64,000 bases of DNA from positions 62,001-126,000 of IMG/VR virus record IMGVR_UViG_3300042558_004148. One strand, 5' to 3'. The position numbers and the translations under genes were made by a program. The notes below the pieces were generated by a model, which saw only the letters and a program-made list of their open reading frames with translations, was not told the origin of the DNA and ran no database searches. Shown one piece after another: positions 2,990-62,291 of this stretch; within the stretch, counting starts at the first letter, position 1, and each line of letters begins with the position of its first letter.

Positions 2990-3265
2990 ATGGACTTAGC
3001 TCTTAATTTTTACCTTGAATACAACCAGGTAATATTTATTAAAAAAATTAAAGGATATAGCATAATAGAGATTCGAAGACATTCTGATCCTATCATGGAT
3101 AATATTATAGAGGTTTGGTATTATGACTCCCGTAAAAAATTAAGGGGTGAATCATCATGGATAACTTTAAATGATCTTATATCGCATATCGCATATTATA
3201 AAACCCTTGGATTTACTGAGCTGACTATAGAAACAAATACCAATAACAGATCTAAAATAAAATAA
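2990..3265 (+). CDS. Hypothetical protein
   Basis: 91-aa ORF in a tightly packed + strand cluster. Confidence 0.65.
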   Translation: MDLALNFYLEYNQVIFIKKIKGYSIIEIRRHSDPIMDNIIEVWYYDSRKKLRGESSWITLNDLISHIAYYKTLGFTELTIETNTNNRSKIK

Positions 3266-17874: not shown

Positions 17875-19599
17875 ATGAACATTTTTAAGAAAAATAACAT
17901 TTTAATAAACGGTCTTCTTGGTGATACGTTTAATTTTTTGCAGGCAACATATAATCAGACAGCAAACGTATTTACTGTTGCTTCAGCTTGGGGACAGATA
18001 TTATTTGTGCTACAAAATCTATCGCAGATGATCCTATATTTTATAGAGGATTCCATAACTGAATTAAACATAGACCAAGCAACTAGGGATTATTCAGTTA
18101 GAAGCTTAGCCAGAATAGCTGGATATGACTCTGGTAGAGCTAGTGCTGCTCAGGGTGAAGTTTCTCTTAAATGGAATACAAGAGAAGGTGGAGTAGGTGG
18201 AGGAGCAGTTATAATAAAAAACAATACACAGATTAGATGTCAGGAAAATGGAAAAACGTATTCTCTTAGGTTTAGTAGTCCTGAAGTAACTATACCTCTT
18301 ACCAGAGGAAATAATCTTAGAGTAAAGCTAGTACAGGGAACTTTTGAAACTGCACTTTTAACTGGGACCGGACAATCACTACAAAGCTATAATTTACCTT
18401 CAACATCAGGAGCTTTCTTGGATCAGTTTTATGTTGATGTTTATGTTAATGAGGAAAAATGGAGAAGATATGATTCGTTATATGACATTCCACTCAACGG
18501 GAAGGGATATCTAGTTAGAACAGGTATACAAGAAGGGCTTGATGTTTATTTTGGTAACTCTAATTTCGGTATGGCTCCACCGAGAGGATCCAGAATAAGA
18601 GTCGAATACCTTAAAACAAATGGAATAAGTGGTAATGCTAATTCAACTAAGGATAATCAGTTAACGTATAGGTTTTCTAATCAGGGTACAGATCTATTCG
18701 GAGCATCAGTTGATCTTAATCTCTATATAGATGTTAATAATGAAATAGATCCAGCATTTGGTAATAATCCTGAATCTCTTAATTTAATAAGACTAGTTGC
18801 ACCTAAAACTTCAAGATCTTTTGTTTTTGCAAATCCTGATAACTACGAGGTATTTTTAAATAAATTAGGAATATTTTCTCAGATACAGGCATTTTCAACA
18901 TTTGATGATGATTACCTTGACGACGATAACGTGGTTTACATATATTTAGTCCCTGACGTTACATTAAATATATCATCTAATGAGGATTATTTTAGTGTTC
19001 CTGTTTCTGACTTCTTTCTAAGTAATGCACAAAAGGCAAGAGTACTTAATCTTATAGAGGATTCTGGTTCTATGATAGCAACAACTGTTGTTAAAATTGT
19101 ACAACCAGTAATAACTAAATTTGTTGGAAATGCTATATTAAGTATATTTGAAGGCTCAGATCCGGAGACAATAAGACAGGCAGTGAGAAAGAAAATTTCA
19201 GATTATATGTTAAATCTGAAAAGAAGAGATAAAATACCAAAATCTGACATAATAGCATTAATAGAATCTGTACCTGGCGTTGATTCGGTTTCTTTCTACT
19301 TTATTGGGCAGGCTAATGAACAGAATCAAATAAACATCCAGGATCTGGATAATGTCTCGCAGGCACAACTGGACGAGGTTATTGGGATGGATCAATTTGG
19401 TGATATAATTATAGGCAGAAATCAATTGATTCTTTTGAGAGGTGGTTGGACAGATAGAAACGGAACATCGTACACAGAGGATTTTGTTGACGGAAAACCA
19501 GGTCCACTCAATGTAACAATAGCATCCATAGTTCCTAAATCTTTTAGAATGGATTTAAACACCTCTATGAAGAGCCAAATAATTAATCAGGGAAGCTAA
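17875..19599 (+). CDS. Baseplate wedge protein, gp6 / baseplate J-like
   Basis: Follows gp25; SLARIAGY-x-S-x-RASAAQG and IRLVAPK motifs; 574 aa. Confidence 0.8.
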   Translation: MNIFKKNNILINGLLGDTFNFLQATYNQTANVFTVASAWGQILFVLQNLSQMILYFIEDSITELNIDQATRDYSVRSLARIAGYDSGRASAAQGEVSLKWNTREGGVGGGAVIIKNNTQIRCQENGKTYSLRFSSPEVTIPLTRGNNLRVKLVQGTFETALLTGTGQSLQSYNLPSTSGAFLDQFYVDVYVNEEKWRRYDSLYDIPLNGKGYLVRTGIQEGLDVYFGNSNFGMAPPRGSRIRVEYLKTNGISGNANSTKDNQLTYRFSNQGTDLFGASVDLNLYIDVNNEIDPAFGNNPESLNLIRLVAPKTSRSFVFANPDNYEVFLNKLGIFSQIQAFSTFDDDYLDDDNVVYIYLVPDVTLNISSNEDYFSVPVSDFFLSNAQKARVLNLIEDSGSMIATTVVKIVQPVITKFVGNAILSIFEGSDPETIRQAVRKKISDYMLNLKRRDKIPKSDIIALIESVPGVDSVSFYFIGQANEQNQINIQDLDNVSQAQLDEVIGMDQFGDIIIGRNQLILLRGGWTDRNGTSYTEDFVDGKPGPLNVTIASIVPKSFRMDLNTSMKSQIINQGS

Positions 19600-20151: not shown

Positions 20152-23100
20152 ATGGCAGATATAAGACTTAAGTTTTTCAATAAGGAGGGTAATCCATTAA
20201 ATTTCGATTATATTGGACCAACCGGAGCTAATCCTTTAGATTCCAAATTTACATACCGTACATCCATATCGGGTGCTAGTAATCCTGGTGATCTTGATAT
20301 CACAGAATTTCCAACATATTATAATTTCTTATTCAATGCTGAGGATCTTAATGCATTTGATATGACCTCATGGTATACTGAAGCTGTTTATTGCTTAGAT
20401 AGAGGTACCGAAATATATCTTGAAGGATCTGTTGCTGGTCAGAATGACTTCAGAGGAAAAATATCAGCTGTTAATCTGTTAGGTAACCAATTAACGATAA
20501 CTATACCTAGTGACTATTATTCTGGACAAAGTATAATCAGTCCAGATAATCAGATATACTTTACCACACCTTATAAAAATAGACCCGGTGGATATTTTAA
20601 GGGAAATATTTATTTTGATCCGGTATCTGCTAATCTATACGAGAACGAGCAAATATTTGTTGTACAGGAATTTTATAACGTAACTACATCACAAATTACA
20701 TATGGACTTCCTCATACCGGCGCAACAGGAGCTACTGCTTCACCACAATGGAGAAGTAGATGGTACAATGATAATTATGGCGAAACTGACGTTTCGGAAA
20801 TAATATTCACTTATTCAATATCTGATCAATTGGATGGTGGTGATGGTGAGCCATTAATAGTTAGCTACCCTAACATGATTTTTGATGTTGATGTTGATCC
20901 TAACGATTTCTATTCTAATGGATACGTCAATACAACAACTTCATCCATTGATTCCAGTGCACTCCCAATAAATGTTGCCTTAAATGGACCAGAGGGTGCG
21001 GAAAATATTTATGAGAGAAAACTTATAATTGATGATATATCAACTGGAACACCAGAGAAAATATTGGAGGTTGATTACTATGGACAAATAATAGGTGAGG
21101 ACGAGAGATTTAAAGTGCTTTTAGCAAATCTGGGGAGATCTTTTTATAATAGTGATTCAGTTATACTTAGAGATCATGATCCTGCAGAACCTTTACCTAA
21201 TTACTTAGAGATAAACGAGAAGAGAAAAGAGCTTATGGTAGCTGGTGAGGAAATATTTCCTTATATTGGTAGTTATAAGGGTCTTATTAATGCTCTTAAG
21301 TTTTTTGGTTATCAGGATCTTAGAATAAAAGAATACTGGTTAAATCTTAAATATAATGGACTAAGAGTAGAATCGCCTATTCAGCAGAATAAGAATTTTT
21401 TAAATGCTATTAATAAACAGCAATCGCAGGGATATAATATGTCATATCAGATTGGTGATATATTGGACAACCCTAATTCTGGTAAATATAAGCTTACTCA
21501 AACCTACGGACCTAATAAAAATGGAGAATATGTTCTGGATGTTACATCGGAGGATACATTAGTACCAAGTAGAACATACAAAAAAACGTCACTATTTGGA
21601 CTTTATTATGATCTTAATAAAGTAACCGGTGAGGAAGACGAATTTAATTTACCGATAGTAGAGGACGCTTTTAAATTCACACAAGAGGAAGTACTTATTA
21701 AAATATTTGCTCTGAAGGAAAGATTGAAGAGGGATTATCTACCATTAAACGCCAGAATTATAGATATAACTGGTGAGGGTATTTATTTTGGTGTATATAA
21801 TACCAAATCCTGGACTGATATAATGGGAAGATCCGATTTTGATTCAGGCTTCGAGTTTGATTTCTATCCTAATCCGGATTTCGGTTTTTTAGAAGATCTA
21901 AGAAACTTTTCCACACGACCATTAGCTGGTGCTATACAAAGTCCTAGTTCATATAATAACAATTATTCTTCAACTGTTCAGTTTCTAGGTGGTACTGGAA
22001 GTGCCATTTATTTTAGTGGAAATCTACCGAATGGATCTACTGGACCTAATCCTATATTAAACCTATACATAGGTCAAACATACGAATTTAGCGTTTCCGA
22101 TACTTCCACCTATGGTTATGATCTTATAATTACAACCGATCCGAATTTAACACAGATAGATCCACTCGGAATAATTAATAATGGTGCAACCGGAGGTAAT
22201 TCAATTACATGGTACGTAGAACCTAGCCAAACTTCACCAGTATATTATTATTCTTCGGTAAATCCTTCATTATTGCTGGGTACTATTAATATACTACCCC
22301 CTATATTATCTGATTTAGGAAACATAGTGAATCCGCTAGATTCACAACAAATTTATAATAGCCAACAGAATCAATCGATGTTAAGTGCTATAGATAATTT
22401 CTATAAGCTTAAGCAGGAGGGGAAAATAATAGAATTGGGTGACGATAAATACGATCCTGTTGCATACATAGATCCAAATACTGGACAGCAGTACGACGTT
22501 CCTATTGGAATGCCAGTAATACTTGAACTATTTCCTGATATTTGGACATGGAACGAACTTAATACTAGCTGGGATTCCATAATGATACCTGCATATCGGG
22601 TAGGCGATAGAGTTGAGGTTCCATCTGTCCCATCATTCGGTACAGTTGTTGGAGTTAGTTACTCGACGGGCCAATATAATGTCCTTCTAGATCCACCTTA
22701 CAACATAACGACACAGTTTGGTGAGATGGAACTATTTGCAACAACCCAGGTATTTTTATTATTAACTTGGAGTAATATAGATTTTTCGAATGCGATGGAG
22801 ATAGAGTGGATAGTCGATAAAACCACCACTCAGTCAGGATCGCCTTATAATTTCAATTTTAGAGGTCCTATAGCGGACTTTTATAAAATGGCACACTTCT
22901 TACCATACAGCGGAGATTATAAGATTACGTGCAATGTATATGATGCCTTTAATGCTAAAAGCACTGTCATTAAGAATTCTATAATCAAGGTTCAACCAAA
23001 AACCATAGATATCGATTCTTGGACTAGATACAGAGAGGTTGAAAATTATATATGGGATAATGTTGATCGAGGATGGGACTCATATAAATCAATATGGGAA

Positions 23101-24912
23101 TATCCTGCAGAGGGAGATAGTATAGAGGTTCTAGAAAAAACAATACCTTCTGAGATTCTGAAATTTGCTACGTATGGGAATAAAGCCGAAGAGGGTCAGA
23201 GTTTATATGTTAAAACTAATCTAGATCCTGTCGGAGCAACCGGTGAGATATTATTATCTCAGAATGTTGTAGCGATAGATGAGATATATTCACTTCAGAT
23301 ATTTACTGGTCAATACGGATCAGCCACGGTATCTACCATAACACCTCATGGACTAAATGATGGTGATGAATTAACAATAATAGGAAGTATACCTGAAATA
23401 GATGGTAGATGGACAGCAAATATAGTTTCCCCTACTGTATTTACTATACCTTCCGTAATTTCAAATTCATGGAACGGTGTTGTTCTCGAGACAACCCCGG
23501 TAAATAGATATGTTATAGATCCAACTATATACACGACACAAAAAATTACTGGAGCTGGTTTAATAAAGGTCTATGTAAATAATAGAGAAATTGGAAGTGC
23601 TGATGCAGGTGACACATTATATCACACTGCAAATGCAATAACTTCTTCGATAAACTCACTAAGAACATACCCGGACTATTTTGCATCTTGTCTGAATCCT
23701 AGTACGGATCCTGTCTCTATTATAATATATGCTCCTGATGAATTAGGAGCCGATCAGAATGGTGTTCCGCTATCTGCTACTGTAACGGGAACATTATCAC
23801 TAAGTTCCATATCTGGAACTCTGGAGAATGGAGTAAGTCCTTCCGAAACATATGTTTATTGGTCTGAAAATTCAGAAATCTACCCCAATGATAATCTAAG
23901 ATTTTGGGGAACTAAAAATCTGGACTGGCAAATATTTAATGAGACTAGCTGGAATGATGGATATGCACATAGCTGGTATGATTTCGAATTTAATAACGAT
24001 TGGTTAGGTGGATATGAATTACATACAATATTACCCGGTGACCACGTCAAAGTAAGTACTGGTAATTCAACATACCCGTTCCCAGTTGGTGTTACATTAA
24101 CCAGTCCTGGAAGTTCGATGACTGTACAAGAAGTTGCTGATCAATTAAATAGTTCTGGCGAAACGCATATAACTAATTTTTACTATAGACCTATACCTAG
24201 CGATACCGGATCATTAAGCACAATAACCGGTCCTATTAATCTGGATCTTACTAATGCGTCGGTCCCTGTTAGTACATACCCAGCTCCGCCTTCACTAATA
24301 GGAGGTAGTAATGTATTGATACCTAATTTCGGTTACACTGGAGGTACTCCTATAACAACAACGTCTACGACAACGACGACAACAATAGCTCCTACCACTA
24401 CGACAACCACGACTACGACAACCACGACGTCGACAACAACAACGACCACAGCGGCACCTACAACGACTACAACAACGACCATAGATCCTTGTTTACTTGC
24501 TGGTAATGCTGTAATGATTTATCCGACTACGACAACCACGACGTCGACAACAACAACAACAACGGTACCCATAGGACAAGTTATTATGAATAATCTAGAT
24601 AATACCGGAACTATTGAGGATGTGCAGGTGAATTCGAATTCTATTCTGGTAAGTCCAGGAACATTCCCGGTATTACCAAACACAACCGGTGTAGGCAGTT
24701 ACGGATACGGGATACCAGGACTTTCCCAGATAGAAGTAAGTGTTGGTGCGGTGACAATGTATACGGCCGTAAATCTATCATTAAGTACTGGATATACAGA
24801 TTGTCTTTTACTTGATCCGTTTGCAGGGTTCGTAGTATTCTCGATGGTAGATTTATCAACAGCACCAACTATAACAATAACACTAGAACAGCAAGGAACC
24901 GCGTGTGCATAA
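20152..24912 (+). CDS. Large baseplate wedge protein, gp7-like, with PKD-like segments and a C-terminal mucin-like Thr tract
   Basis: IGSYKGLINALKFFGY motif typical of gp7/P2 gpI-like wedge proteins; position after gp6; poly-Thr near the C-terminus. Confidence 0.65.
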   Translation: MADIRLKFFNKEGNPLNFDYIGPTGANPLDSKFTYRTSISGASNPGDLDITEFPTYYNFLFNAEDLNAFDMTSWYTEAVYCLDRGTEIYLEGSVAGQNDFRGKISAVNLLGNQLTITIPSDYYSGQSIISPDNQIYFTTPYKNRPGGYFKGNIYFDPVSANLYENEQIFVVQEFYNVTTSQITYGLPHTGATGATASPQWRSRWYNDNYGETDVSEIIFTYSISDQLDGGDGEPLIVSYPNMIFDVDVDPNDFYSNGYVNTTTSSIDSSALPINVALNGPEGAENIYERKLIIDDISTGTPEKILEVDYYGQIIGEDERFKVLLANLGRSFYNSDSVILRDHDPAEPLPNYLEINEKRKELMVAGEEIFPYIGSYKGLINALKFFGYQDLRIKEYWLNLKYNGLRVESPIQQNKNFLNAINKQQSQGYNMSYQIGDILDNPNSGKYKLTQTYGPNKNGEYVLDVTSEDTLVPSRTYKKTSLFGLYYDLNKVTGEEDEFNLPIVEDAFKFTQEEVLIKIFALKERLKRDYLPLNARIIDITGEGIYFGVYNTKSWTDIMGRSDFDSGFEFDFYPNPDFGFLEDLRNFSTRPLAGAIQSPSSYNNNYSSTVQFLGGTGSAIYFSGNLPNGSTGPNPILNLYIGQTYEFSVSDTSTYGYDLIITTDPNLTQIDPLGIINNGATGGNSITWYVEPSQTSPVYYYSSVNPSLLLGTINILPPILSDLGNIVNPLDSQQIYNSQQNQSMLSAIDNFYKLKQEGKIIELGDDKYDPVAYIDPNTGQQYDVPIGMPVILELFPDIWTWNELNTSWDSIMIPAYRVGDRVEVPSVPSFGTVVGVSYSTGQYNVLLDPPYNITTQFGEMELFATTQVFLLLTWSNIDFSNAMEIEWIVDKTTTQSGSPYNFNFRGPIADFYKMAHFLPYSGDYKITCNVYDAFNAKSTVIKNSIIKVQPKTIDIDSWTRYREVENYIWDNVDRGWDSYKSIWEYPAEGDSIEVLEKTIPSEILKFATYGNKAEEGQSLYVKTNLDPVGATGEILLSQNVVAIDEIYSLQIFTGQYGSATVSTITPHGLNDGDELTIIGSIPEIDGRWTANIVSPTVFTIPSVISNSWNGVVLETTPVNRYVIDPTIYTTQKITGAGLIKVYVNNREIGSADAGDTLYHTANAITSSINSLRTYPDYFASCLNPSTDPVSIIIYAPDELGADQNGVPLSATVTGTLSLSSISGTLENGVSPSETYVYWSENSEIYPNDNLRFWGTKNLDWQIFNETSWNDGYAHSWYDFEFNNDWLGGYELHTILPGDHVKVSTGNSTYPFPVGVTLTSPGSSMTVQEVADQLNSSGETHITNFYYRPIPSDTGSLSTITGPINLDLTNASVPVSTYPAPPSLIGGSNVLIPNFGYTGGTPITTTSTTTTTTIAPTTTTTTTTTTTTSTTTTTTAAPTTTTTTTIDPCLLAGNAVMIYPTTTTTTSTTTTTTVPIGQVIMNNLDNTGTIEDVQVNSNSILVSPGTFPVLPNTTGVGSYGYGIPGLSQIEVSVGAVTMYTAVNLSLSTGYTDCLLLDPFAGFVVFSMVDLSTAPTITITLEQQGTACA
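24355..24564 (+). repeat. Poly-Thr (ACN)n coding tract, 46 Thr in 70 codons, with an internal exact 34-bp duplication
   Basis: Translated directly; cgactacgacaaccacgacgtcgacaacaacaac occurs at 24410-24443 and 24524-24557. Confidence 0.95.
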
Positions 24913-24966
24913 TAATGTTGCTAATGATCCAATGATATTAAAAAATATAAAATATAAAATATAAAA

Positions 24967-26166
24967 ATGGCTACAGCTACTATAACTTTAACCACTGCGG
25001 GAACTGGAACAGGACCATTTGATCTGTATTCCGATTTTGATGGATATGTTACCCCATTTGAAACTGGTGTTGATAAATCATTATTGGTTTCTGGATATAC
25101 AACATCATTGGTTTATAATGGAACAACTATAATTAGGGTTCAGTCCACAAGTATACAGTGTACAAATTATATAGATTTGTCAGTATCAGGTATAACTACC
25201 ACAACCACGACATCAACATCAACAACAACAACGACAACAACTCCTCCGGTGCTATGTGTATGTTATACAGTGGTTTATACTGGACCCCCTCCACCTCCAC
25301 AATTTTATACTGGTACAACGGATTACTCATATATTGATTGTTCGGGACTTACCGTGAATACAATAGTATCAGAAGGTTACCCCGTTGATGTTTGTGCTCA
25401 AGAAAACAGTATTATAATAACCGGTGGTGACGAACTCGCTGGCTGGGACGTGTCACTGTTTAATTGCTGTACTAGTAATCCAATGGATCTTAGTTATGGT
25501 GTAAATATTAGCACAGTTTGTAACAATCCGCAGCTTGTGTCTGTTTGTGCTGATACAAATGATATATGTACCGCAACAGTATTGACAGATTCTGATTTTA
25601 ACCAGAATTGTCTTACTACACCTGCATCTGCAGGATATTATGGAGATGGAACAAACTATAGATATTGGGATGGATCAACATTTACTACCGGATGTACTCT
25701 TTGTACTGGATGTTTAGTTGCTGACACATTAATAACATTATCTAACGGGACAACTAAATTGATACAGGATATACAGGTTGGCGATGTATTGAAATCCCTT
25801 GATGTGGCAGGAATGCCTCTGGCACCGGATCAATGGTATCATTGGAGCAGTGATATATTGGATTACATAAATTCCACATCAACTGTGATCGGTGTATCAA
25901 TCCATGAATTTGATTCCGTAATAAACATTAATAACGGTAAATTAATTGCAACCTACACCCATAACCACGTAGTTAAGCAAAATGACGTATGGTACATTAG
26001 AACAACATTCGAATTGAATGTTGGTGATGTGTTATTGGATATAGATAACAACGAATTTGAAATTACCTCATTGGTTGTTGTAAATGCACCAATAACTGTA
26101 TATGATATTGATGTGAATAACAGTAATTTATATTTTGCAAATGATACATTAACTCATAACAAATAA
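24967..26166 (+). CDS. Thr-rich, Cys-rich putative virion protein with a C-terminal Hint domain
   Basis: Thr tract at 25195-25242, PPPPP and a Cys-rich middle; Hint from CLVADTLI (25711) to VYDIDV...FANDTLTHNK-stop. Confidence 0.85.
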   Translation: MATATITLTTAGTGTGPFDLYSDFDGYVTPFETGVDKSLLVSGYTTSLVYNGTTIIRVQSTSIQCTNYIDLSVSGITTTTTTSTSTTTTTTTPPVLCVCYTVVYTGPPPPPQFYTGTTDYSYIDCSGLTVNTIVSEGYPVDVCAQENSIIITGGDELAGWDVSLFNCCTSNPMDLSYGVNISTVCNNPQLVSVCADTNDICTATVLTDSDFNQNCLTTPASAGYYGDGTNYRYWDGSTFTTGCTLCTGCLVADTLITLSNGTTKLIQDIQVGDVLKSLDVAGMPLAPDQWYHWSSDILDYINSTSTVIGVSIHEFDSVININNGKLIATYTHNHVVKQNDVWYIRTTFELNVGDVLLDIDNNEFEITSLVVVNAPITVYDIDVNNSNLYFANDTLTHNK

Positions 26167-26223
26167 TAAATTACATGATGGAATTTATTACTATTAGGAG
26201 AGTATAATTATAAAAATTTGGGT

Positions 26224-27192
26224 ATGATAAACAAAAAAATAACCTTTATTTGCGCACAGCCGGATGTGCCTTATTTTCATTGGCAAGTGGAGGTACTAAT
26301 CCATAATTTTATGAAAAGTGGAATAAATCCCAATTGGATAGAAATTCTATTTGCCTATGATGAGTCAATATCACCAGAGGGATCTGAGTTGGCTAAAAAA
26401 TACCCATACGTTAGATTTTTTTTCTACAAGAAAACTCCGGTTGAAAACTACGGATATATTCCAATTTTAAGACCGGATATATTGGAACAGCATTTTCTTA
26501 AATATCCTGGTCTTTCAGATGATAATATATTCTATCATGATTCTGATATCATCTTTAGAGAACTTCCTGACTTTAATTCATTGATTAATGATGATGTCTG
26601 GTATCTAAGTGACACGGTTTCCTATATAGGATCAGATTATATTAAAAGTAAATCCGAGCAAATTTTGGAAGATATGTGTGACATAGCTGGAGTTTCCAGG
26701 GATCTTGTTGAAGCTAACAATCCAAATTCAGGAGGTGCGCAATATCTTATGAAAAATATAGATCACCTATTCTGGAGGGACGTTAAATACGTTGCTCTCA
26801 ATCTGTATAAATATATGCTTGATGCTGAGGTGGAGGAGAGGAAAACTCTATCTGAAGAGCAGTTATCTTCTTACAACCCAATACAGAAATGGTGCGCAGA
26901 TATGTGGGCGGTATTATGGTGTGGACTTAAAAGGGGAAGTCAGGTTAGATTATCTGATGAACTTGGATTTAGCTGGGGATCTAGCTGGGGGCAAACAGAA
27001 TGGAATAAACATAAAATATTACACAATGCCGGAGTTACAGATAATGGGAACGGGAAGATGTTTTATAAAGGAGATTATATAAATAATTCTCCTTGGGAAG
27101 CTGATCTATCCACAATAAGTCCCGATGCCAATTCTTATAATTATGTACAGGCCATATTATATGCTAAAGAAATGAGATCTAAACTGCATTGA
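26224..27192 (+). CDS. GT-A glycosyltransferase resembling plant peptidyl-serine alpha-galactosyltransferase / Hyp O-arabinosyltransferase (GT96/GT95-like)
   Basis: YFHWQVEVLIHNFMKSG, HDSDIIFR (DxD), GGAQYLM and KWCADMWAV align in order with SERGT1 motifs recalled as YFDWQTVGLMHSFLKSG, LDADMIIR, VGGLLAM and GWISEMYGY. An alternative TTG start lies at 26218. Confidence 0.75.
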   Translation: MINKKITFICAQPDVPYFHWQVEVLIHNFMKSGINPNWIEILFAYDESISPEGSELAKKYPYVRFFFYKKTPVENYGYIPILRPDILEQHFLKYPGLSDDNIFYHDSDIIFRELPDFNSLINDDVWYLSDTVSYIGSDYIKSKSEQILEDMCDIAGVSRDLVEANNPNSGGAQYLMKNIDHLFWRDVKYVALNLYKYMLDAEVEERKTLSEEQLSSYNPIQKWCADMWAVLWCGLKRGSQVRLSDELGFSWGSSWGQTEWNKHKILHNAGVTDNGNGKMFYKGDYINNSPWEADLSTISPDANSYNYVQAILYAKEMRSKLH

Positions 27193-33083: not shown

Positions 33084-33833
33084 TTATCCGTTATTTTCGT
33101 CCCATTCATCGAACGTTTCCTCTATAATTTTTACTATAGGATCTCTAACAATATCATTTACTCCAAAGCTCATTGTTCCTATATCGGGTTTCCCGTCAAA
33201 TAACTTAACCACGAGATCAAGAGACGAAAGCTTGGGGTTTTTCATATCAATTTGTTTAGTGTCTCCCGTAATGATCATTTTAGTATCCGTACCGATACGA
33301 GTCATCGTGGACCTCATATTCTTCTTGGTTATGTTTTGAGCTTCGTCTACGATGATTATAGCATTGTCTATGGACCTCCCTCTAATAAAAGCCAATGGTA
33401 GAACCTCTATTAATTTTTGATCTAGCATAATGTTAGTTAAACCCTCACCGATTAACTTATGGAAGTTGTCCAGGAATGATATTGTAAAGGGTAACATTTT
33501 TTCTTTTAAATCTCCTTTAAGAAATCCAACTTCCTCTCCTTCTAATACCGTTACACTTTTTACTAAAATAATTTTTTTAAATCTCTGCTCGGTCTTTAAT
33601 AATTTTAATGCTTGAGCACATGCTAAATAAGTCTTTCCCGTTCCTGCTGGTCCAGCTGCTATGGTTATTTTATTGTCGCTTATCAGGCTTATTAGTTTTT
33701 TCTGACTTTCGTTTTTATGCTTGTAATCCAATCTTAGTTTTTGTAGATCAAATTTTAATGGATTTGCCACCTGTGTCGGCGGAAACACGTCGTAAAATTC
33801 TTCATCCGAAATTCTCTTCTTTCTGTTAGCCAT
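33084..33833 (-). CDS. phoH: PhoH-like ATPase
   Basis: GPAGTGKTYLA Walker A, EEVGFLKG, RGRSIDNAIIIVDEAQN and ITGDTKQID. Confidence 0.95.
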   Translation of the reverse strand: MANRKKRISDEEFYDVFPPTQVANPLKFDLQKLRLDYKHKNESQKKLISLISDNKITIAAGPAGTGKTYLACAQALKLLKTEQRFKKIILVKSVTVLEGEEVGFLKGDLKEKMLPFTISFLDNFHKLIGEGLTNIMLDQKLIEVLPLAFIRGRSIDNAIIIVDEAQNITKKNMRSTMTRIGTDTKMIITGDTKQIDMKNPKLSSLDLVVKLFDGKPDIGTMSFGVNDIVRDPIVKIIEETFDEWDENNG

Positions 33834-33880
33834 AGAGTTTATTTTATTTTATTTTTATTTTCCATAAATTAATAAATATT

Positions 33881-35017: not shown

Positions 35018-35039
35018 TTAAATAAAATAAAATAGAACA

Positions 35040-47968: not shown

Positions 47969-49639
47969 ATGACAGAGTTACAGTTACTTAGAATAGAAGA
48001 AGGGGATTCTCAGAATAATATAATTGATAAAATTAATTATAATTTTACCGGTATAATTGACTTCGGTGGAGGCCCTTATGGAAAGATAGGTAAAATTGGA
48101 CCTGATGGAAATAAGGGAGCTACTGGCCCGGTGGGTTCATACGGGGATCTCGGAAGGAGAGGTAGTATATGGAACATTGGTCCGACACAACCCCAAGGAA
48201 ATAACGTATATTTATCAGATTATTGGATGAACACTGATGAATTTAATAATATATACGAGTTCAACGGAAATTCTTGGGCATTGAGTGGCATAAACGTAAG
48301 ATCCAGGGATTTATTTTATGTTGATGGTCCAGTAATAACATCATCGGGCAACAGTACTAAAAGGGGTTATTACATATCATCTTCTCTTCCCTTAAGTTAT
48401 ACAACAGTAATTAGTGACGTCCAGATAACAAGTGGATCAAGCACCAGTTCCCCTAATGCGATACCAAATCCGCAGTATAGTAAATTCGTTATATCCACCG
48501 ATGGACTTAATCCGAATAAGAATATACTGGAGTTTAGTAAACACCAGTATTCTTCGAATTTAGCATTTACACAAAAAACACCCAGATTTTATTGGACTCA
48601 GGGAGCGACATCAGCAAGAGGAAATTATGGACTTAGCTTGCTTAGTGGATATAGATTCGATATAAACACTTCTTCCGATTTATATATTGCTTCCATTTCG
48701 TCAGGTATTAATTTAACCTCAACTGGAATCAATATGACAACGCCTAGTACTTTACCATTCGGTATAAATGCAACATCGAGAATTACATTTAATTTTTCGA
48801 CAGGTTCAGCCATATTCTCGACCAGTAATATAAGTTTCTCAGGTGGATTATTTTCTTTTAAAACCCCGATATATTCTTCTACCCAAAGTAATAGTGTTAT
48901 TCCAACGATGAGGTTGGCTTCAGCGTCGGCTAATACTGGAAATATTAGATATGTTTATCCATCCACTGGAACTAAGCTAATAAATCTATTTAGAAGTGTT
49001 CAATCTGGATCTATTATAAACTATGTAGATGGGTCTGGATTATTTTATTTTAATAAAAGAGTTAATTCCATACAGAATGCACAATCTGTAACTGCAACAA
49101 CGACATCGGTAGTTGCAGGAACACAGATAGATTGGGTTACAGTTCTTCCCTCTATCTCATTAACGTCAACCGGCAATTATGTATGGTCGAATAATGGAAT
49201 GGATTTAGTTGTAACAAAACCAACATCTACTGCAAACCAGAGAGGATTATGTTTATGGACTCCTGCCACTGGTGGAGCACCTGGTGGAAATGGTGGGTGG
49301 CTAAAATTATTGGAAAATGGTGAATCGATAAACTTTAGAGTTCATAGTGGCAATTCAGGAACTTCTAGTACCGATAATTTTAAATTCATTGGACTAAATA
49401 CTTCAAATAATCAGGGAGATGCACCTAATAATACACCATCTTCAAACTATTCATTTATTAATTTATCTGCATCTAATGGGGTTGGAGCATCTACAATAGA
49501 CATAACAATAGTTAATATACAAGGAACCGGATCAACTGCGGGTAACAGAAGATGGTTCAAAGTATATTATTCAGCATGGGGAGGTGGATTAACAACAAAC
49601 CAATGTGGTGTACTAACAACATATAATGCAACAGCCTAA
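47969..49639 (+). CDS. Collagen-repeat tail fibre paralog B
   Basis: GDSQNNIIDKINYNF followed by 11 G-X-Y triplets ending at Trp. Confidence 0.75.
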   Translation: MTELQLLRIEEGDSQNNIIDKINYNFTGIIDFGGGPYGKIGKIGPDGNKGATGPVGSYGDLGRRGSIWNIGPTQPQGNNVYLSDYWMNTDEFNNIYEFNGNSWALSGINVRSRDLFYVDGPVITSSGNSTKRGYYISSSLPLSYTTVISDVQITSGSSTSSPNAIPNPQYSKFVISTDGLNPNKNILEFSKHQYSSNLAFTQKTPRFYWTQGATSARGNYGLSLLSGYRFDINTSSDLYIASISSGINLTSTGINMTTPSTLPFGINATSRITFNFSTGSAIFSTSNISFSGGLFSFKTPIYSSTQSNSVIPTMRLASASANTGNIRYVYPSTGTKLINLFRSVQSGSIINYVDGSGLFYFNKRVNSIQNAQSVTATTTSVVAGTQIDWVTVLPSISLTSTGNYVWSNNGMDLVVTKPTSTANQRGLCLWTPATGGAPGGNGGWLKLLENGESINFRVHSGNSGTSSTDNFKFIGLNTSNNQGDAPNNTPSSNYSFINLSASNGVGASTIDITIVNIQGTGSTAGNRRWFKVYYSAWGGGLTTNQCGVLTTYNATA

Positions 49640-52035: not shown

Positions 52036-52867
52036 CAAGGAGACGGTTTCAAAAGTTGGTAATATAGTTACCAGCAGATTTTTTATGCTAGCTATGCTGG
52101 TTGTATTGGTTCTGTTATTACTTAGACAATGTGGCGAAGCAGATAATGCTAAAGCTGAAGCATTGAGAGAGCATAATAATTATCTAGCATCACTGGATAG
52201 TGTAAGAACAATCAAAAATGACATGGGTCATTTAATACAGGAGAAAGCAACATATGAATTAAAAGCTTCTGAGCTTTCTGCGGAGCAAAAGAATTTAATT
52301 CAGCAACTAGGACTTAAATCAAATGGTAGGGGTGATACTCCAAACTCAGTAATCAATATGATAGCCGAGATTAGAGATAGCATTAATGTAGCATCCACTA
52401 TTGTAAAGGACCCAAATGGAGCAGAATCAATAACATTTGTACATAATCCGCAGATGCCAGGGAATAATAAATTAAAAATCGATGGTAAGACTCCATATGT
52501 TGTGGAAATACGTGTAGATCCAACAGATTCTACCAAGTATATAGCATCCGTTATACCAGGTCTTACCTCATTAATAATGGAGCAGAATATAGATATAACA
52601 ACTGGAATCTATAGAGACCCAAAAACTAAAAGAATGATGACGAGGGTTAGTACAACATATCCGGGTCTTACTTTTAATGATATAAATTCATTTGACATAA
52701 CGGATAGTCCAGATACCAGAAAAGCGCTAAAAGCTGCTAGAAAGGAATTTGGGTTTGGTGCTCAATTGGGATACGGTCTTTCTGGATCAAATTCCGGTAT
52801 AACACCTGGGTTTTATATAGGTATCGGTTTACAATATTCACCTAAGTTCTTACAATTCGGAAAATAA
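52022..52867 (+). CDS. Putative membrane lipoprotein, spanin-like candidate
   Basis: Basic N-terminus, hydrophobic stretch ending LLLRQC, coiled coil, and amphipathic C-terminal beta strands FGAQLGYG...FYIGIGLQY. Confidence 0.45.
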   Translation: MKYFSKETVSKVGNIVTSRFFMLAMLVVLVLLLLRQCGEADNAKAEALREHNNYLASLDSVRTIKNDMGHLIQEKATYELKASELSAEQKNLIQQLGLKSNGRGDTPNSVINMIAEIRDSINVASTIVKDPNGAESITFVHNPQMPGNNKLKIDGKTPYVVEIRVDPTDSTKYIASVIPGLTSLIMEQNIDITTGIYRDPKTKRMMTRVSTTYPGLTFNDINSFDITDSPDTRKALKAARKEFGFGAQLGYGLSGSNSGITPGFYIGIGLQYSPKFLQFGK

Positions 52868-52875
52868 TATAAAAA

Positions 52876-55191
52876 ATGGCATTTACAACTACATCTAAAT
52901 TTGTTCAGATAACACCATACCTCCTAATGGAGTATATGTACGCTGATGAACCAACCCCGGAGACATATTTTGTTAATAACGGACCTGTTACTGTGGGGTA
53001 CGATAAGTTGGTAAATGACTACATGAATAATAACGTGCAGGTATTTAATAGCGAATCTGATTATTCAATAACACATAATACCACGGAGAATAGTGTGGTG
53101 AGAATAGGGGAAAGCTCATTTGTTACTTTAGATTCGAATCTGATAATACCTTTTAATGACTATAGTGATGAATTAACTAATACTGTTGATCTACCTATAA
53201 CATTTCCATCGAACATACAGGTTGTTTACGATACTGTTAGATATCACATTAGGGCCGGTTATAACCTAAATAATATAGATGGTATTATAATGGGAATAGA
53301 ATACCAGGATCAGAACTTGGAGTTTGTTACGGTTTCACAAATCCTTATAAAAAAAGGAACGGAGCAGGACTATTATTTGAATCCTAGCCCAGTTACCATA
53401 GGATCTAATATCTATGATAAGTATTTTGAAATAAAAGTACCAAATTTAAAAGATATGGGTGATAAGTATTTAACTGCATCAAATGTTTTTAAACCACAGA
53501 CACTCGCATCACTAATAAGCTCCAGTGGAGAAGGATTTATATACGGTTCCCCCATCAGAATAAGCGCTTGGCAAATTCAGAATACCGTTGATTTTAATGG
53601 ATATCAAAGGTATAATTCTTCCCTGATATCTATTTTATCATTAGAGCAGGAGGATCCATTTTCTAATATAGGAGCAACAATAAAAGAATCTGACCAGGGT
53701 CAATTCTTTGAATATTATGCAACCGATAATGAGGGATTTATAGAGGACTTTGTTCTTTTCCAGAATTCAATTGGTAATTCATACTATATAAGTCATGAAA
53801 TAGAAGTTCTTGAACAAATTGGGGCAGCTTTTATACAGACGTCACAATTTCAATCAATACAAACTACCGCATACGATCTACCTAATTATTATAGACCCAT
53901 AGTTAGAAATGCTGGTGTTGCTGCTAGTTTTACGTTGAGATATACCATGTCGCTGGTTAACAATGTTAATCAAAATAGAACAATAAGAATATCAACATAT
54001 ACATCATCCAATCCTTCACAATGGGGAACTAATATAACACCAATATCACTTAGTAATTTTCCACAGGTTCAGAAGATCTATAATAGGATATATTCGCAGG
54101 CTGATATTAAATTGGGTAATAATAATCAGAATAAGATAAGGGAAATAATTAAATACAGCAATGTTTTTATAGATCAAAATTATGTTACTGCAACTATAAA
54201 TAATCTAAATTTCGTTGATAATACTTTGAGTAATATTGATGGGGCAGGAAATAGTACAGCATATGGTACGGGAAAACTAACCATAGCGATATCTCCTTTT
54301 GATAATTTCTATAAATTTAAGTTCATTAAAAGTGGTCCATCTGGAGATCCAGTTGCAATAGATCTTAGTAGCTCCGGTAAATTTAATTTATCTTTTGTTA
54401 ATCCAAAGGGTAATAAAATACAGATACCATCATTGGACGATAAAGGTATAGCTAATCCATTATCTGGAGAATTAGCATTTAAGATAGATGAATCTATATC
54501 CATGCAGATATTACAGATAACCGATAGAAGATTTTTTATAACTAATGGTACCACAGTAAGTCCAGCAACAGGTTCTGTTACTGGAAGTGAGACAATAAAG
54601 GTTTCATCAGGGGTAAGCAGTAATGTTCTGGAGAAGAGAATAGAAAGCGTAGTCGCAACAAGGAGAGACGAGAATCAATCGATATCAAGTGTGGGTAATA
54701 GCGTAAGTATAGGAGGATCTACCTTAGCCAGTACCGTTGGTAATACCAGCTCCGTTATGTATTGGGGTTATTGGAAAAAAGATGGGGAAGCTGACTTTGT
54801 AACGGGTCCAACTGCTGCTCCTGCTCCTATCATAACAACGTCAGGAAGCGGAACAAGTGGAACTGGAATAATAGGTACCTTGGCCCCTGCCAGATCAATA
54901 GTTAAATCCATACCTCCTGCATTTATTACATCCGGACAGGCCTCGGCTATAACAACTCCGAGAGCAAATACATCGCAGTCATTGAGGGGTAATATTTTGA
55001 TCTCTGCTTTAAGCGCTGAAATGGCTGGATATAAAGCAATAGGTTGGGCTGATTCGACAGTAATGCAATATTTCTTAAATCCAGGTAAACCCGGATATAT
55101 CAAATATCCTAATTTAACTAAGTCTGATTTTGTTAAAGCTGCTGATGGTATACTTTCACCAGCTAGCATATCTTCAATTTCAGGGCAATAA
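52876..55191 (+). CDS. Putative structural protein
   Basis: 771 aa; beta-rich N-terminal part and a Ser/Thr/Gly-rich C-terminal linker. Confidence 0.55.
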   Translation: MAFTTTSKFVQITPYLLMEYMYADEPTPETYFVNNGPVTVGYDKLVNDYMNNNVQVFNSESDYSITHNTTENSVVRIGESSFVTLDSNLIIPFNDYSDELTNTVDLPITFPSNIQVVYDTVRYHIRAGYNLNNIDGIIMGIEYQDQNLEFVTVSQILIKKGTEQDYYLNPSPVTIGSNIYDKYFEIKVPNLKDMGDKYLTASNVFKPQTLASLISSSGEGFIYGSPIRISAWQIQNTVDFNGYQRYNSSLISILSLEQEDPFSNIGATIKESDQGQFFEYYATDNEGFIEDFVLFQNSIGNSYYISHEIEVLEQIGAAFIQTSQFQSIQTTAYDLPNYYRPIVRNAGVAASFTLRYTMSLVNNVNQNRTIRISTYTSSNPSQWGTNITPISLSNFPQVQKIYNRIYSQADIKLGNNNQNKIREIIKYSNVFIDQNYVTATINNLNFVDNTLSNIDGAGNSTAYGTGKLTIAISPFDNFYKFKFIKSGPSGDPVAIDLSSSGKFNLSFVNPKGNKIQIPSLDDKGIANPLSGELAFKIDESISMQILQITDRRFFITNGTTVSPATGSVTGSETIKVSSGVSSNVLEKRIESVVATRRDENQSISSVGNSVSIGGSTLASTVGNTSSVMYWGYWKKDGEADFVTGPTAAPAPIITTSGSGTSGTGIIGTLAPARSIVKSIPPAFITSGQASAITTPRANTSQSLRGNILISALSAEMAGYKAIGWADSTVMQYFLNPGKPGYIKYPNLTKSDFVKAADGILSPASISSISGQ

Positions 55192-61739: not shown

Positions 61740-62291
61740 ATGATAATGAAATCATTTACTGAATTTACTAACAATGTATCCGAAGCTAGCTCCGAGGGCA
61801 GCACAGGGAAGACTACATTTAGTAGATGGCTTAGAGATATGAACACGAGAGTTGGTGATGATATGAAGGATTCTAATTACTATTCTAGTTATTATGATTC
61901 TGATGACAAATATCAAGCTGCAAGAAGAGCAACCAACCTAATTCCTAATGTATTTAGATTAATTACCGGAGCTGGAGCTGCTGTTGCAGATTTCTTAACA
62001 CCTAAAGGATCAAGTAAAGAGGAGAAAAGTTCAAATAAGTTTACTAAGGACGAACTAAAAGCTAAAAAGACTGAAATCCTTAATAAATGGGAAAGGGATA
62101 ATATTGGTGATAAAAAAGTTACCGATGCTGATGCTGAAAAGTTCTATAAATCTGGAGTGATCAAGGGTAAAAAATACTTCGGGAAGGATTTTGATCCAGC
62201 AAACCCTAAGAATAAGGAAGAGGAAATGTACGCCGATTATATGAATGGTATAATGGAGAGGTATTATAAAAAGACAAGCAATGCACAATAA
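61740..62291 (+). CDS. Hypothetical protein, possible head-internal protein
   Basis: N-terminus MKSFTEFTNNVSE is capsid-targeting-like; preceded by the late motif. Confidence 0.7.
   Translation: MIMKSFTEFTNNVSEASSEGSTGKTTFSRWLRDMNTRVGDDMKDSNYYSSYYDSDDKYQAARRATNLIPNVFRLITGAGAAVADFLTPKGSSKEEKSSNKFTKDELKAKKTEILNKWERDNIGDKKVTDADAEKFYKSGVIKGKKYFGKDFDPANPKNKEEEMYADYMNGIMERYYKKTSNAQ

Follow-up and report, generated by a model that had tools for sequence, protein, structure and literature searches.

A C-terminal type-A BIL-like Hint domain on a fibre-/adhesin-like protein of a freshwater jumbo phage: a probable self-excising maturation module

A 64,000-nucleotide stretch of IMG/VR virus record IMGVR_UViG_3300042558_004148 (positions 62,001 to 126,000 of the record, hereafter the window) contains a gene for a 399-residue protein that ends in a Hint domain, a single lysine and a stop codon. 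The record measures 218 kb, is rated 79% complete and stems from a freshwater jumbo phage. The last 151 residues of the protein probably constitute a catalytically intact Hint domain resembling the type-A bacterial intein-like (BIL) domains, which would serve the maturation of a fibre-/adhesin-like virion protein by excising itself in a single turnover. The layout is not a one-off. It exemplifies a large clade of terminal, Lys-flanked, type-A BIL-like Hint domains on fibre-/adhesin-like proteins, whose nearest structural neighbours are almost all from tailed phages.

Searched against the PDB as a single sequence, the Hint region matched BIL2 of the Tetrahymena BUBL1 locus (6Y75/6TMM) with an E-value of 1.4e-6. 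A profile of 23 family members matched the same domain end to end, over positions 2-150 of 151 (E 7.3e-11), and the C. thermocellum BIL domain 2LWY was the second match of this profile. The initial annotation, which had proposed the terminal Hint domain and a comparison with PT-HINT and BIL models, is upheld on the BIL side by the profile match to BIL2, but not on the other: PT-HINT (PF07591) scored 21.6 bits against a gathering cut-off of 27.7. The Hint and Intein_splicing models of Pfam also remained below threshold for this sequence; Intein_splicing was matched by 88 of 110 aligned relatives. PT-HINT domains, moreover, precede a C-terminal toxin domain, whereas the phage Hint has no downstream domain. 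The profile search covered 1.84 billion cluster representatives and yielded 3,625 related clusters at E<1e-3, 758 of them at E<1e-10. A word-based search limited to the Hint region recovered the close family alone, megablast of 10 kb against GenBank phages gave no match, and the 218-kb record contains one Hint match only, hence no paralogue.

In a first full-length AlphaFold2 (AF2) run, which used a near-family alignment of 76 sequences, the two N-terminal domains were well modelled and residues 279-399 had predicted local distance difference test (pLDDT) values below 50. Foldseek returned no match with this model. The low values are attributable to the shallow alignment and not to absence of the fold. 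When the Hint region was modelled with 110 diverse sequences (alignment A4), the mean pLDDT rose to 96.5 with a predicted template modelling score (pTM) of 0.90. Foldseek with the resulting model placed BIL2 at the top of the PDB matches (E 6.7e-10, TM-score 0.76, 24% identity), followed by 2LWY (TM 0.75-0.82) and then by mini-inteins and the Hedgehog domain HhC. There were 51 PDB matches at E<=1e-3, and among the 41 matches listed all are intein, BIL or Hedgehog domains. The initial annotation had made its reading depend in part on whether the region models as a Hint fold, and it does so; the predicted model indicates that the fold of residues 249-398 is real and intact. Uroviricota account for almost all of the closest structural neighbours retrieved from the ESM Atlas and BFVD (TM 0.9-0.96). 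Among GenBank entries, the Hint domain is followed by 7-10 residues in gp108 of Dickeya phage AD1 ('virion structural protein') and its homologues from Erwinia jumbo phages, and likewise in the 'large intein domain protein' of phage NCTB. Database annotation of the clade goes no further than 'Hint domain containing protein'.

The catalytic residues are complete. The 110 diverged sequences of A4 mostly share 28-50% identity with the query, and just four columns of this alignment do not vary: Cys1, the block-B histidine His84 (His332 of the protein), His149 and Asn150. Thr329 of block B is the majority residue at its position. Cys1 and the terminal His-Asn-Lys are unchanged in 62 of the 62 related viral loci with readable junctions, and pairwise comparison of the Hint domain with 22 distinct relatives gave dN/dS values of 0.06-0.18, with synonymous sites saturated. 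The segments quoted in the initial annotation (LVADTLITLSNG, IATYTHNH and YFANDTLTHN) were all recovered by translating 25711-26175, and its claim of a terminal Hint with a full catalytic set on a virion-type protein is borne out. All sequence features that mark type-A BIL domains are present: the His-Asn end, a +1 residue other than Cys, Ser or Thr, the lack of an endonuclease and variable host proteins. Type-A BIL domains, that of C. thermocellum (2LWY) among them, share with the phage domain the minimal Hint size, the N-terminal Cys and the block-B TxxH, and their hosts are likewise variable proteins, of surface or secreted type.

The reading frame closes immediately behind the domain. The codon of Lys399 is followed by TAA (26164-66), a second TAA (26167-69) and, nine bases further on, TGA. 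The downstream open reading frame (ORF) at 26218-27192 (+) shares the frame of the Hint gene, and read-through or fusion into it was ruled out by the three intervening stops; there is thus no hidden C-extein. An identical 399-residue protein was found on 13 contigs and, at 100% identity, on three IMG/VR contigs that are independent of one another and measure 343-373 kb, which shows that the terminal His-Asn-Lys-stop is real and not an assembly error. The assertion that this cannot be a normal intein is accordingly confirmed, as the +1 residue is Lys and the 'C-extein' measures one residue. Class-1 mini-inteins (gp41-1, DnaB, RecA) have the same fold and the same residues in blocks A, B, F and G. 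In contrast to them, the phage Hint has no +1 Cys, Ser or Thr and no functional C-extein, and does not interrupt an essential enzyme at a conserved site.

The lysine is not peculiar to this protein. Among the best 147 representatives of the clade, 142 have an intact His-Asn end, and the counts that follow refer to these 142. No more than 20 residues lie beyond the Asn in 111 representatives (median tail 7 residues), and in 12 of the short-tailed ones a single terminal Lys follows the Asn, as in the 399-residue protein. Position +1 is Lys in 36% and position +2 in 56%, with one or the other in 120 representatives, as compared with 0-8% at +3 to +8 and a Lys background of 3.7%. This enrichment is not a product of search bias, since the profile rewards a +1 Lys slightly and a +2 Lys not at all. 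In the near family the +1 Lys is invariant. Cys, Ser or Thr at +1 accounts for 4%, and each of positions -1 to -5 before Cys1 is Gly in about one-third of cases. Lys399 is therefore not incidental, and Lys at +1/+2 is a hallmark of the clade. Described BIL domains are internal to bacterial proteins and have real C-flanks. The phage domain differs from them in its position at the extreme C-terminus, with a tail of one residue (1-20 in most of the clade), as well as in the conserved Lys, the Gly-rich N-flank and the tailed-phage affiliation of almost all of its closest structural neighbours. A sortase-like LPxTG signal in the tails was considered and rejected, as KLPTQE and similar tails depart from the motif.

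Tandem Hint copies were observed in the metagenomic relatives P0125, P0154, P0188 and P0197, with as many as 13 matched stretches. Successive copies in P0154 and P0188 are linked by His-Asn-Lys-(1-2 residues)-Cys, so that the +1 Lys is kept between repeats, a layout that recalls the BUBL poly-protein.

The portion ahead of the Hint domain comprises three segments (Table 1). The N-terminal β-sandwich aligned with Fn3-type domains at VIA-align Z values of 5-5.7, a generic match, and occurs in many phage proteins that lack a Hint; it is probably a conserved anchor or attachment domain. The linker behind it has counterparts rich in Pro-Thr or Thr at the equivalent place in relatives. With its poly-Thr run and the 12 cysteines of the segment that follows, the protein answers to the earlier description 'Thr/Cys-rich'. 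The Cys-rich domain, invariably ahead of the Hint in the near family, ends in a DUF2510-like YWDG motif followed by C243-x-x-C246-x-Gly248; DUF2510 is also a weak Pfam match to the domain. An Atlas feature search with the Cys-rich domain gave no usable match, and VIA-align on the full model, with results filled by the Fn3-like N-domain, gave no fold match for residues 95-248. This domain probably is a binding module that forms the distal end of the mature protein. Hint-less homologues (P0038-40), with 228-residue proteins of a crAss-like phage among them, end near the same boundary, which indicates that the N-extein is a self-sufficient unit.

The last cysteines of the Cys-rich domain and the catalytic residue together form a CxxCxxC stretch (residues 243-249, window 25693-25713) that terminates in Cys249. 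In the near family a CxxC recurs 1-3 residues upstream of Cys1 with variable spacing, and the wider clade lacks the motif. The motif may be a metal site, or may pair with Cys1 in a redox-sensitive disulfide. A redox 'trap' as a clade-wide feature was dropped, given the restriction to the near family and the varying distance to Cys1.

Table 1 Features of the Hint gene and its surroundings in the window, with divergence from the closest relative (locus L010).
Feature	Window position	Strand	Remarks	Amino acid identity to L010	Omega vs L010
Whole gene, 399-aa precursor	24967..26166	+	N-extein 1-248, Hint 249-398, Lys399, stop; from the ORF list		
N-terminal β-sandwich, Fn3/Ig-like (aa 1-75)	24967..25191	+	AF2 pLDDT 82-96	99%	0.03
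Thr-rich linker (aa 76-94)	25192..25248	+	Read from sequence; AF2 pLDDT <50 at 77-89	89%	0.16
Cys-rich domain (aa 95-248, 12 Cys)	25249..25710	+	AF2 pLDDT mostly >90	68%	0.75
Hint, type-A BIL-like (aa 249-398)	25711..26160	+	Cys249 (25711-25713), Thr329 (25951-53), His332 (25960-62), His397 (26155-57), Asn398 (26158-60)	91%	0.12
Lys399 with TAA TAA double stop	26161..26169	+	Lys399 (26161-63) is the entire 'C-extein'		
AAAAT-type repeat sites	250-280, 3254-3264, 24944-24961, 33840-33855 (-), 35024-35034, 52866-52876				

The divergence from the closest relative is distributed unevenly over these segments. A conserved N-terminal domain, a fast-evolving Cys-rich module and a conserved Hint form the pattern of a receptor-binding protein. 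The surroundings of the cassette vary as well. The Cys-rich domain plus Hint ends ORFs of 399-1,442 residues in 65 related viral loci, behind at least five unrelated N-terminal modules that include a Laminin_G_3 lectin domain and a DUF5122 β-propeller; more distant members have fn3 or Gly_rich_2 domains, and all four of these are of adhesin type. Most of the 65 loci belong to another phage lineage, where the cassette gene lies just upstream of a T4-type portal gene. No flanking gene is common to the window and that lineage. One of the contigs on which a Hint-terminated gene adjoins a T4-type portal gene also contains a ribosomal protein S21 homologue (L004:9705-9899, -).

From the fold, the catalytic residues, the selection acting on them and the architecture of the host proteins we infer cleavage and resolution of a thioester, and by analogy a chaperone or timing role. 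After folding, Cys249 would attack the carbonyl of Gly248 in an N-S acyl shift, giving a Gly248 thioester. Asn398 would then cyclise with the assistance of His397, breaking the Asn398-Lys399 bond and releasing Lys399. Resolution of the thioester, chiefly by hydrolysis, would free the mature protein of residues 1-248 and discard the Hint domain, leaving the fast-evolving Cys-rich domain as the free distal end. A fraction of the thioester, or possibly all of it, may be captured by the conserved Lys amine to give a mature protein ending in Gly-Lys. Type-A BIL domains have an intein-like His-Asn end without a +1 nucleophile, form the N-terminal thioester and cyclise Asn at the C-junction, and their products arise mostly by cleavage, with some ligation through the freed amino group (PMC4031507, PMC7664689). 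Because the nearest relatives are type-A BIL domains, in which both junctions can be cleaved, and His-Asn is kept, the C-terminal junction of the phage domain is probably active too. The outcomes that the initial annotation had put forward, release or covalent coupling by way of the thioester, are the appropriate set of hypotheses, but it was incomplete with regard to this junction and to the Lys.

The Hint would thereby serve as a conserved cap, helping assembly along or setting its timing before cutting itself off. By analogy, the intramolecular chaperone domain Peptidase S74 is a conserved C-terminal module of variable fibres and spikes that cleaves itself and is lost once assembly is complete (PMC7824862). 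The two would resemble each other in function alone: S74 is a Ser-Lys dyad protease whereas the Hint would employ a Cys thioester and Asn cyclisation, and the folds are unrelated. Pfam gave no match to S74 (PF13884) in the 399-residue protein, whose C-terminal fold is that of a Hint. One Hint-terminated relative adjoins an S74-terminated fibre gene.

Several points weigh against maturation by hydrolytic self-excision. If water alone resolved the thioester, the invariant His-Asn and the strongly conserved +1/+2 Lys would be left without an explanation; Hedgehog proteins and type-B BIL domains cleave the N-junction with neither. The chaperone or timing role would follow solely from the analogy with S74, and the location in the virion from gene context and domain types. 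The literature search returned neither a paper dealing with Hint domains at the end of phage structural proteins nor a biochemical or proteomic report of cleavage, of the 399-residue protein or of its phage homologues.

The conserved Lys admits another outcome, ligation in cis ('terminal splicing'), with the +1/+2 Lys as acyl acceptor of the Gly248 thioester. Either the ε-amine would attack before Asn cyclisation to give an isopeptide branch, or the α-amine would attack after Asn cyclisation, along the type-A BIL route; the Hint would be excised, and the mature protein would end in Lys or in a short tail that contains it. The sharp confinement of Lys to +1/+2 and its invariance in the near family are in keeping with such a role, and the invariant His-Asn indicates that C-junction chemistry is retained. 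The Gly-rich stretch from -1 to -5 would present an unhindered, ubiquitin-like Gly thioester. Type-A BIL domains can ligate through the freed amino group without any side-chain nucleophile (PMC4031507). A precedent for the ε-amine is offered by BIL2 (Tetrahymena thermophila BUBL1, 6TMM/6Y75), the best sequence and structure match and the closest solved homologue, which is reported to resolve the thioester with a Lys ε-amine to form an isopeptide and to conjugate its N-extein to other proteins (PMC8616854). The parallel has its bounds: BIL2 is eukaryotic and Zn-regulated, and lies between two ubiquitin-like domains, one of which it conjugates, whereas the phage Hint has no such domain, its cargo is a phage structural module and its only Lys in cis is the last residue. 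The BIL domains studied give mainly cleavage products (PMC7664689). One added Lys offers no obvious biological gain, a single free lysine would diffuse off after Asn cyclisation unless held by the active site, and the residue could instead have a catalytic or electrostatic part or be a structural contact. Ligation in cis is the main alternative, but on balance it appears unlikely as the principal outcome.

Were the Gly248 thioester attacked by a Lys or other nucleophile of another virion protein or a host-surface molecule, an ATP-independent weld between the fibre module and its partner would result, as with BUBL or Hedgehog. Phage particles can contain covalent cross-links, for example the isopeptides of the HK97 capsid. 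The Gly-rich linker ahead of Cys1 would suit this chemistry, and conjugation of the BIL2 N-extein to Lys of other proteins is reported (PMC8616854). Coupling in trans, however, needs neither the invariant His-Asn nor a Lys in cis, and Hint-less homologues exist. No conserved partner gene was seen, the flanks being entirely different between the two cassette-carrying phage lineages. The protein ends at Hint residue 150 plus Lys and has no region for adduct recognition. For HhC the reverse applies: it shares the Hint fold (TM 0.70 to 1AT0) and the N-S acyl shift that releases or transfers an N-terminal cargo, but has a sterol-recognition region and no His-Asn end. The transfer to lipid or sugar that the initial annotation had included among the possible outcomes is thus disfavoured, as no such region follows the minimal 150-residue Hint. 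Coupling to a separate partner is less likely than capture by the Lys in cis, and we regard it as distinctly unlikely. The broader proposition, that the +1/+2 Lys is a natural acyl acceptor in an ATP-independent, Lys-directed ligation, be it a cap in cis or conjugation to a Lys of virion or host, is doubtful in our view.

Finally, the domain could be the relic of a selfish, decaying mini-intein, or a non-catalytic domain retained for binding or oligomerisation. Large phages often carry inteins, and a selfish intein, too, should evolve under purifying selection. A free-standing SegE-type GIY-YIG homing endonuclease gene (L002:6969-7430) is found directly downstream of the Hint-terminated family member P0036, and could aid movement of the cassette between phages. 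The Hint itself, on the other hand, has no internal endonuclease and no +1 nucleophile, and resides in variable, non-housekeeping proteins with diverse N-terminal modules. A domain with a purely structural role would have no need of the invariance seen in all catalytic residues. At the extreme C-terminus one nonsense mutation would delete the Hint harmlessly, yet it persists in most of the 142 representatives, which argues that it is useful. Its retention under purifying selection thus points to a useful role and away from a selfish relic. This alternative, whether as relic or as non-catalytic domain, is the least probable. Self-excision during maturation therefore remains the reading that we favour.

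The phage genome is probably about 373 kb long, as judged by two contigs of 373,467 and 373,485 bp, and the Hint gene recurs nearly unchanged in at least 16 metagenome studies of lakes, rivers and estuaries. It lies within a run of very large + strand genes that follows a gp6-like baseplate wedge gene (17875-19599) and includes a tail-fibre-like gene (47969-49639). The upstream neighbour (20152-24912, +) encodes a 1,586-residue protein in which several long poly-Thr runs close to the C-terminus resemble the linker of the Hint protein; the sole match of this neighbour is phrog_28177 (unknown function, E 2e-19). The downstream gene (26218-27192, +) matches phrog_4417 (unknown function, E 1e-65), has no Pfam match and, in the closest relative (L010), again adjoins the Hint gene. 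Amid the + strand structural block, the opposite strand carries a phoH gene at 33084-33833 (-), matched by Pfam PhoH with E 8e-62.

An A/T-rich leader (24944..24966, +) with two overlapping copies of AATATAAAATA abuts the ATG of the Hint gene. Repeats of this AAAAT type (AAAATAAAATA / AATATAAAATA) number 35 in the window against 15.6 expected by shuffling, and cluster directly upstream of several gene starts, that of the Hint gene among them (Table 1). Judging by sequence and placement, the leader is a possible late promoter or translation-start element.

BIL-type Hint domains were described in 2003, with Amitai (2003) and Dassa (2004) as references for the type-A domains. To our knowledge no biological role of these domains is firmly established, and our literature search found no functional study of the terminal Hint clade. 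A large, conserved BIL-like clade is now placed at a defined site, the C-terminal end of fibre-/adhesin-like virion proteins, and has a testable signature: a Gly-rich flank, Cys1, TxxH, His-Asn, (x)Lys and a short tail. Genes of this kind probably encode precursors, which would imply a mature receptor-binding protein about 150 residues shorter than the ORF. If the Hint merely cleaves, it would represent a second, independent solution to the tail-fibre maturation problem that S74 domains solve. If the Lys is the acceptor, the clade would embody a natural ligation chemistry that is new, in which Lys takes the place of the block-G nucleophile and which serves phage particle assembly as a matter of routine, and would be of interest to protein engineering for traceless C-terminal processing or Lys-directed ligation.

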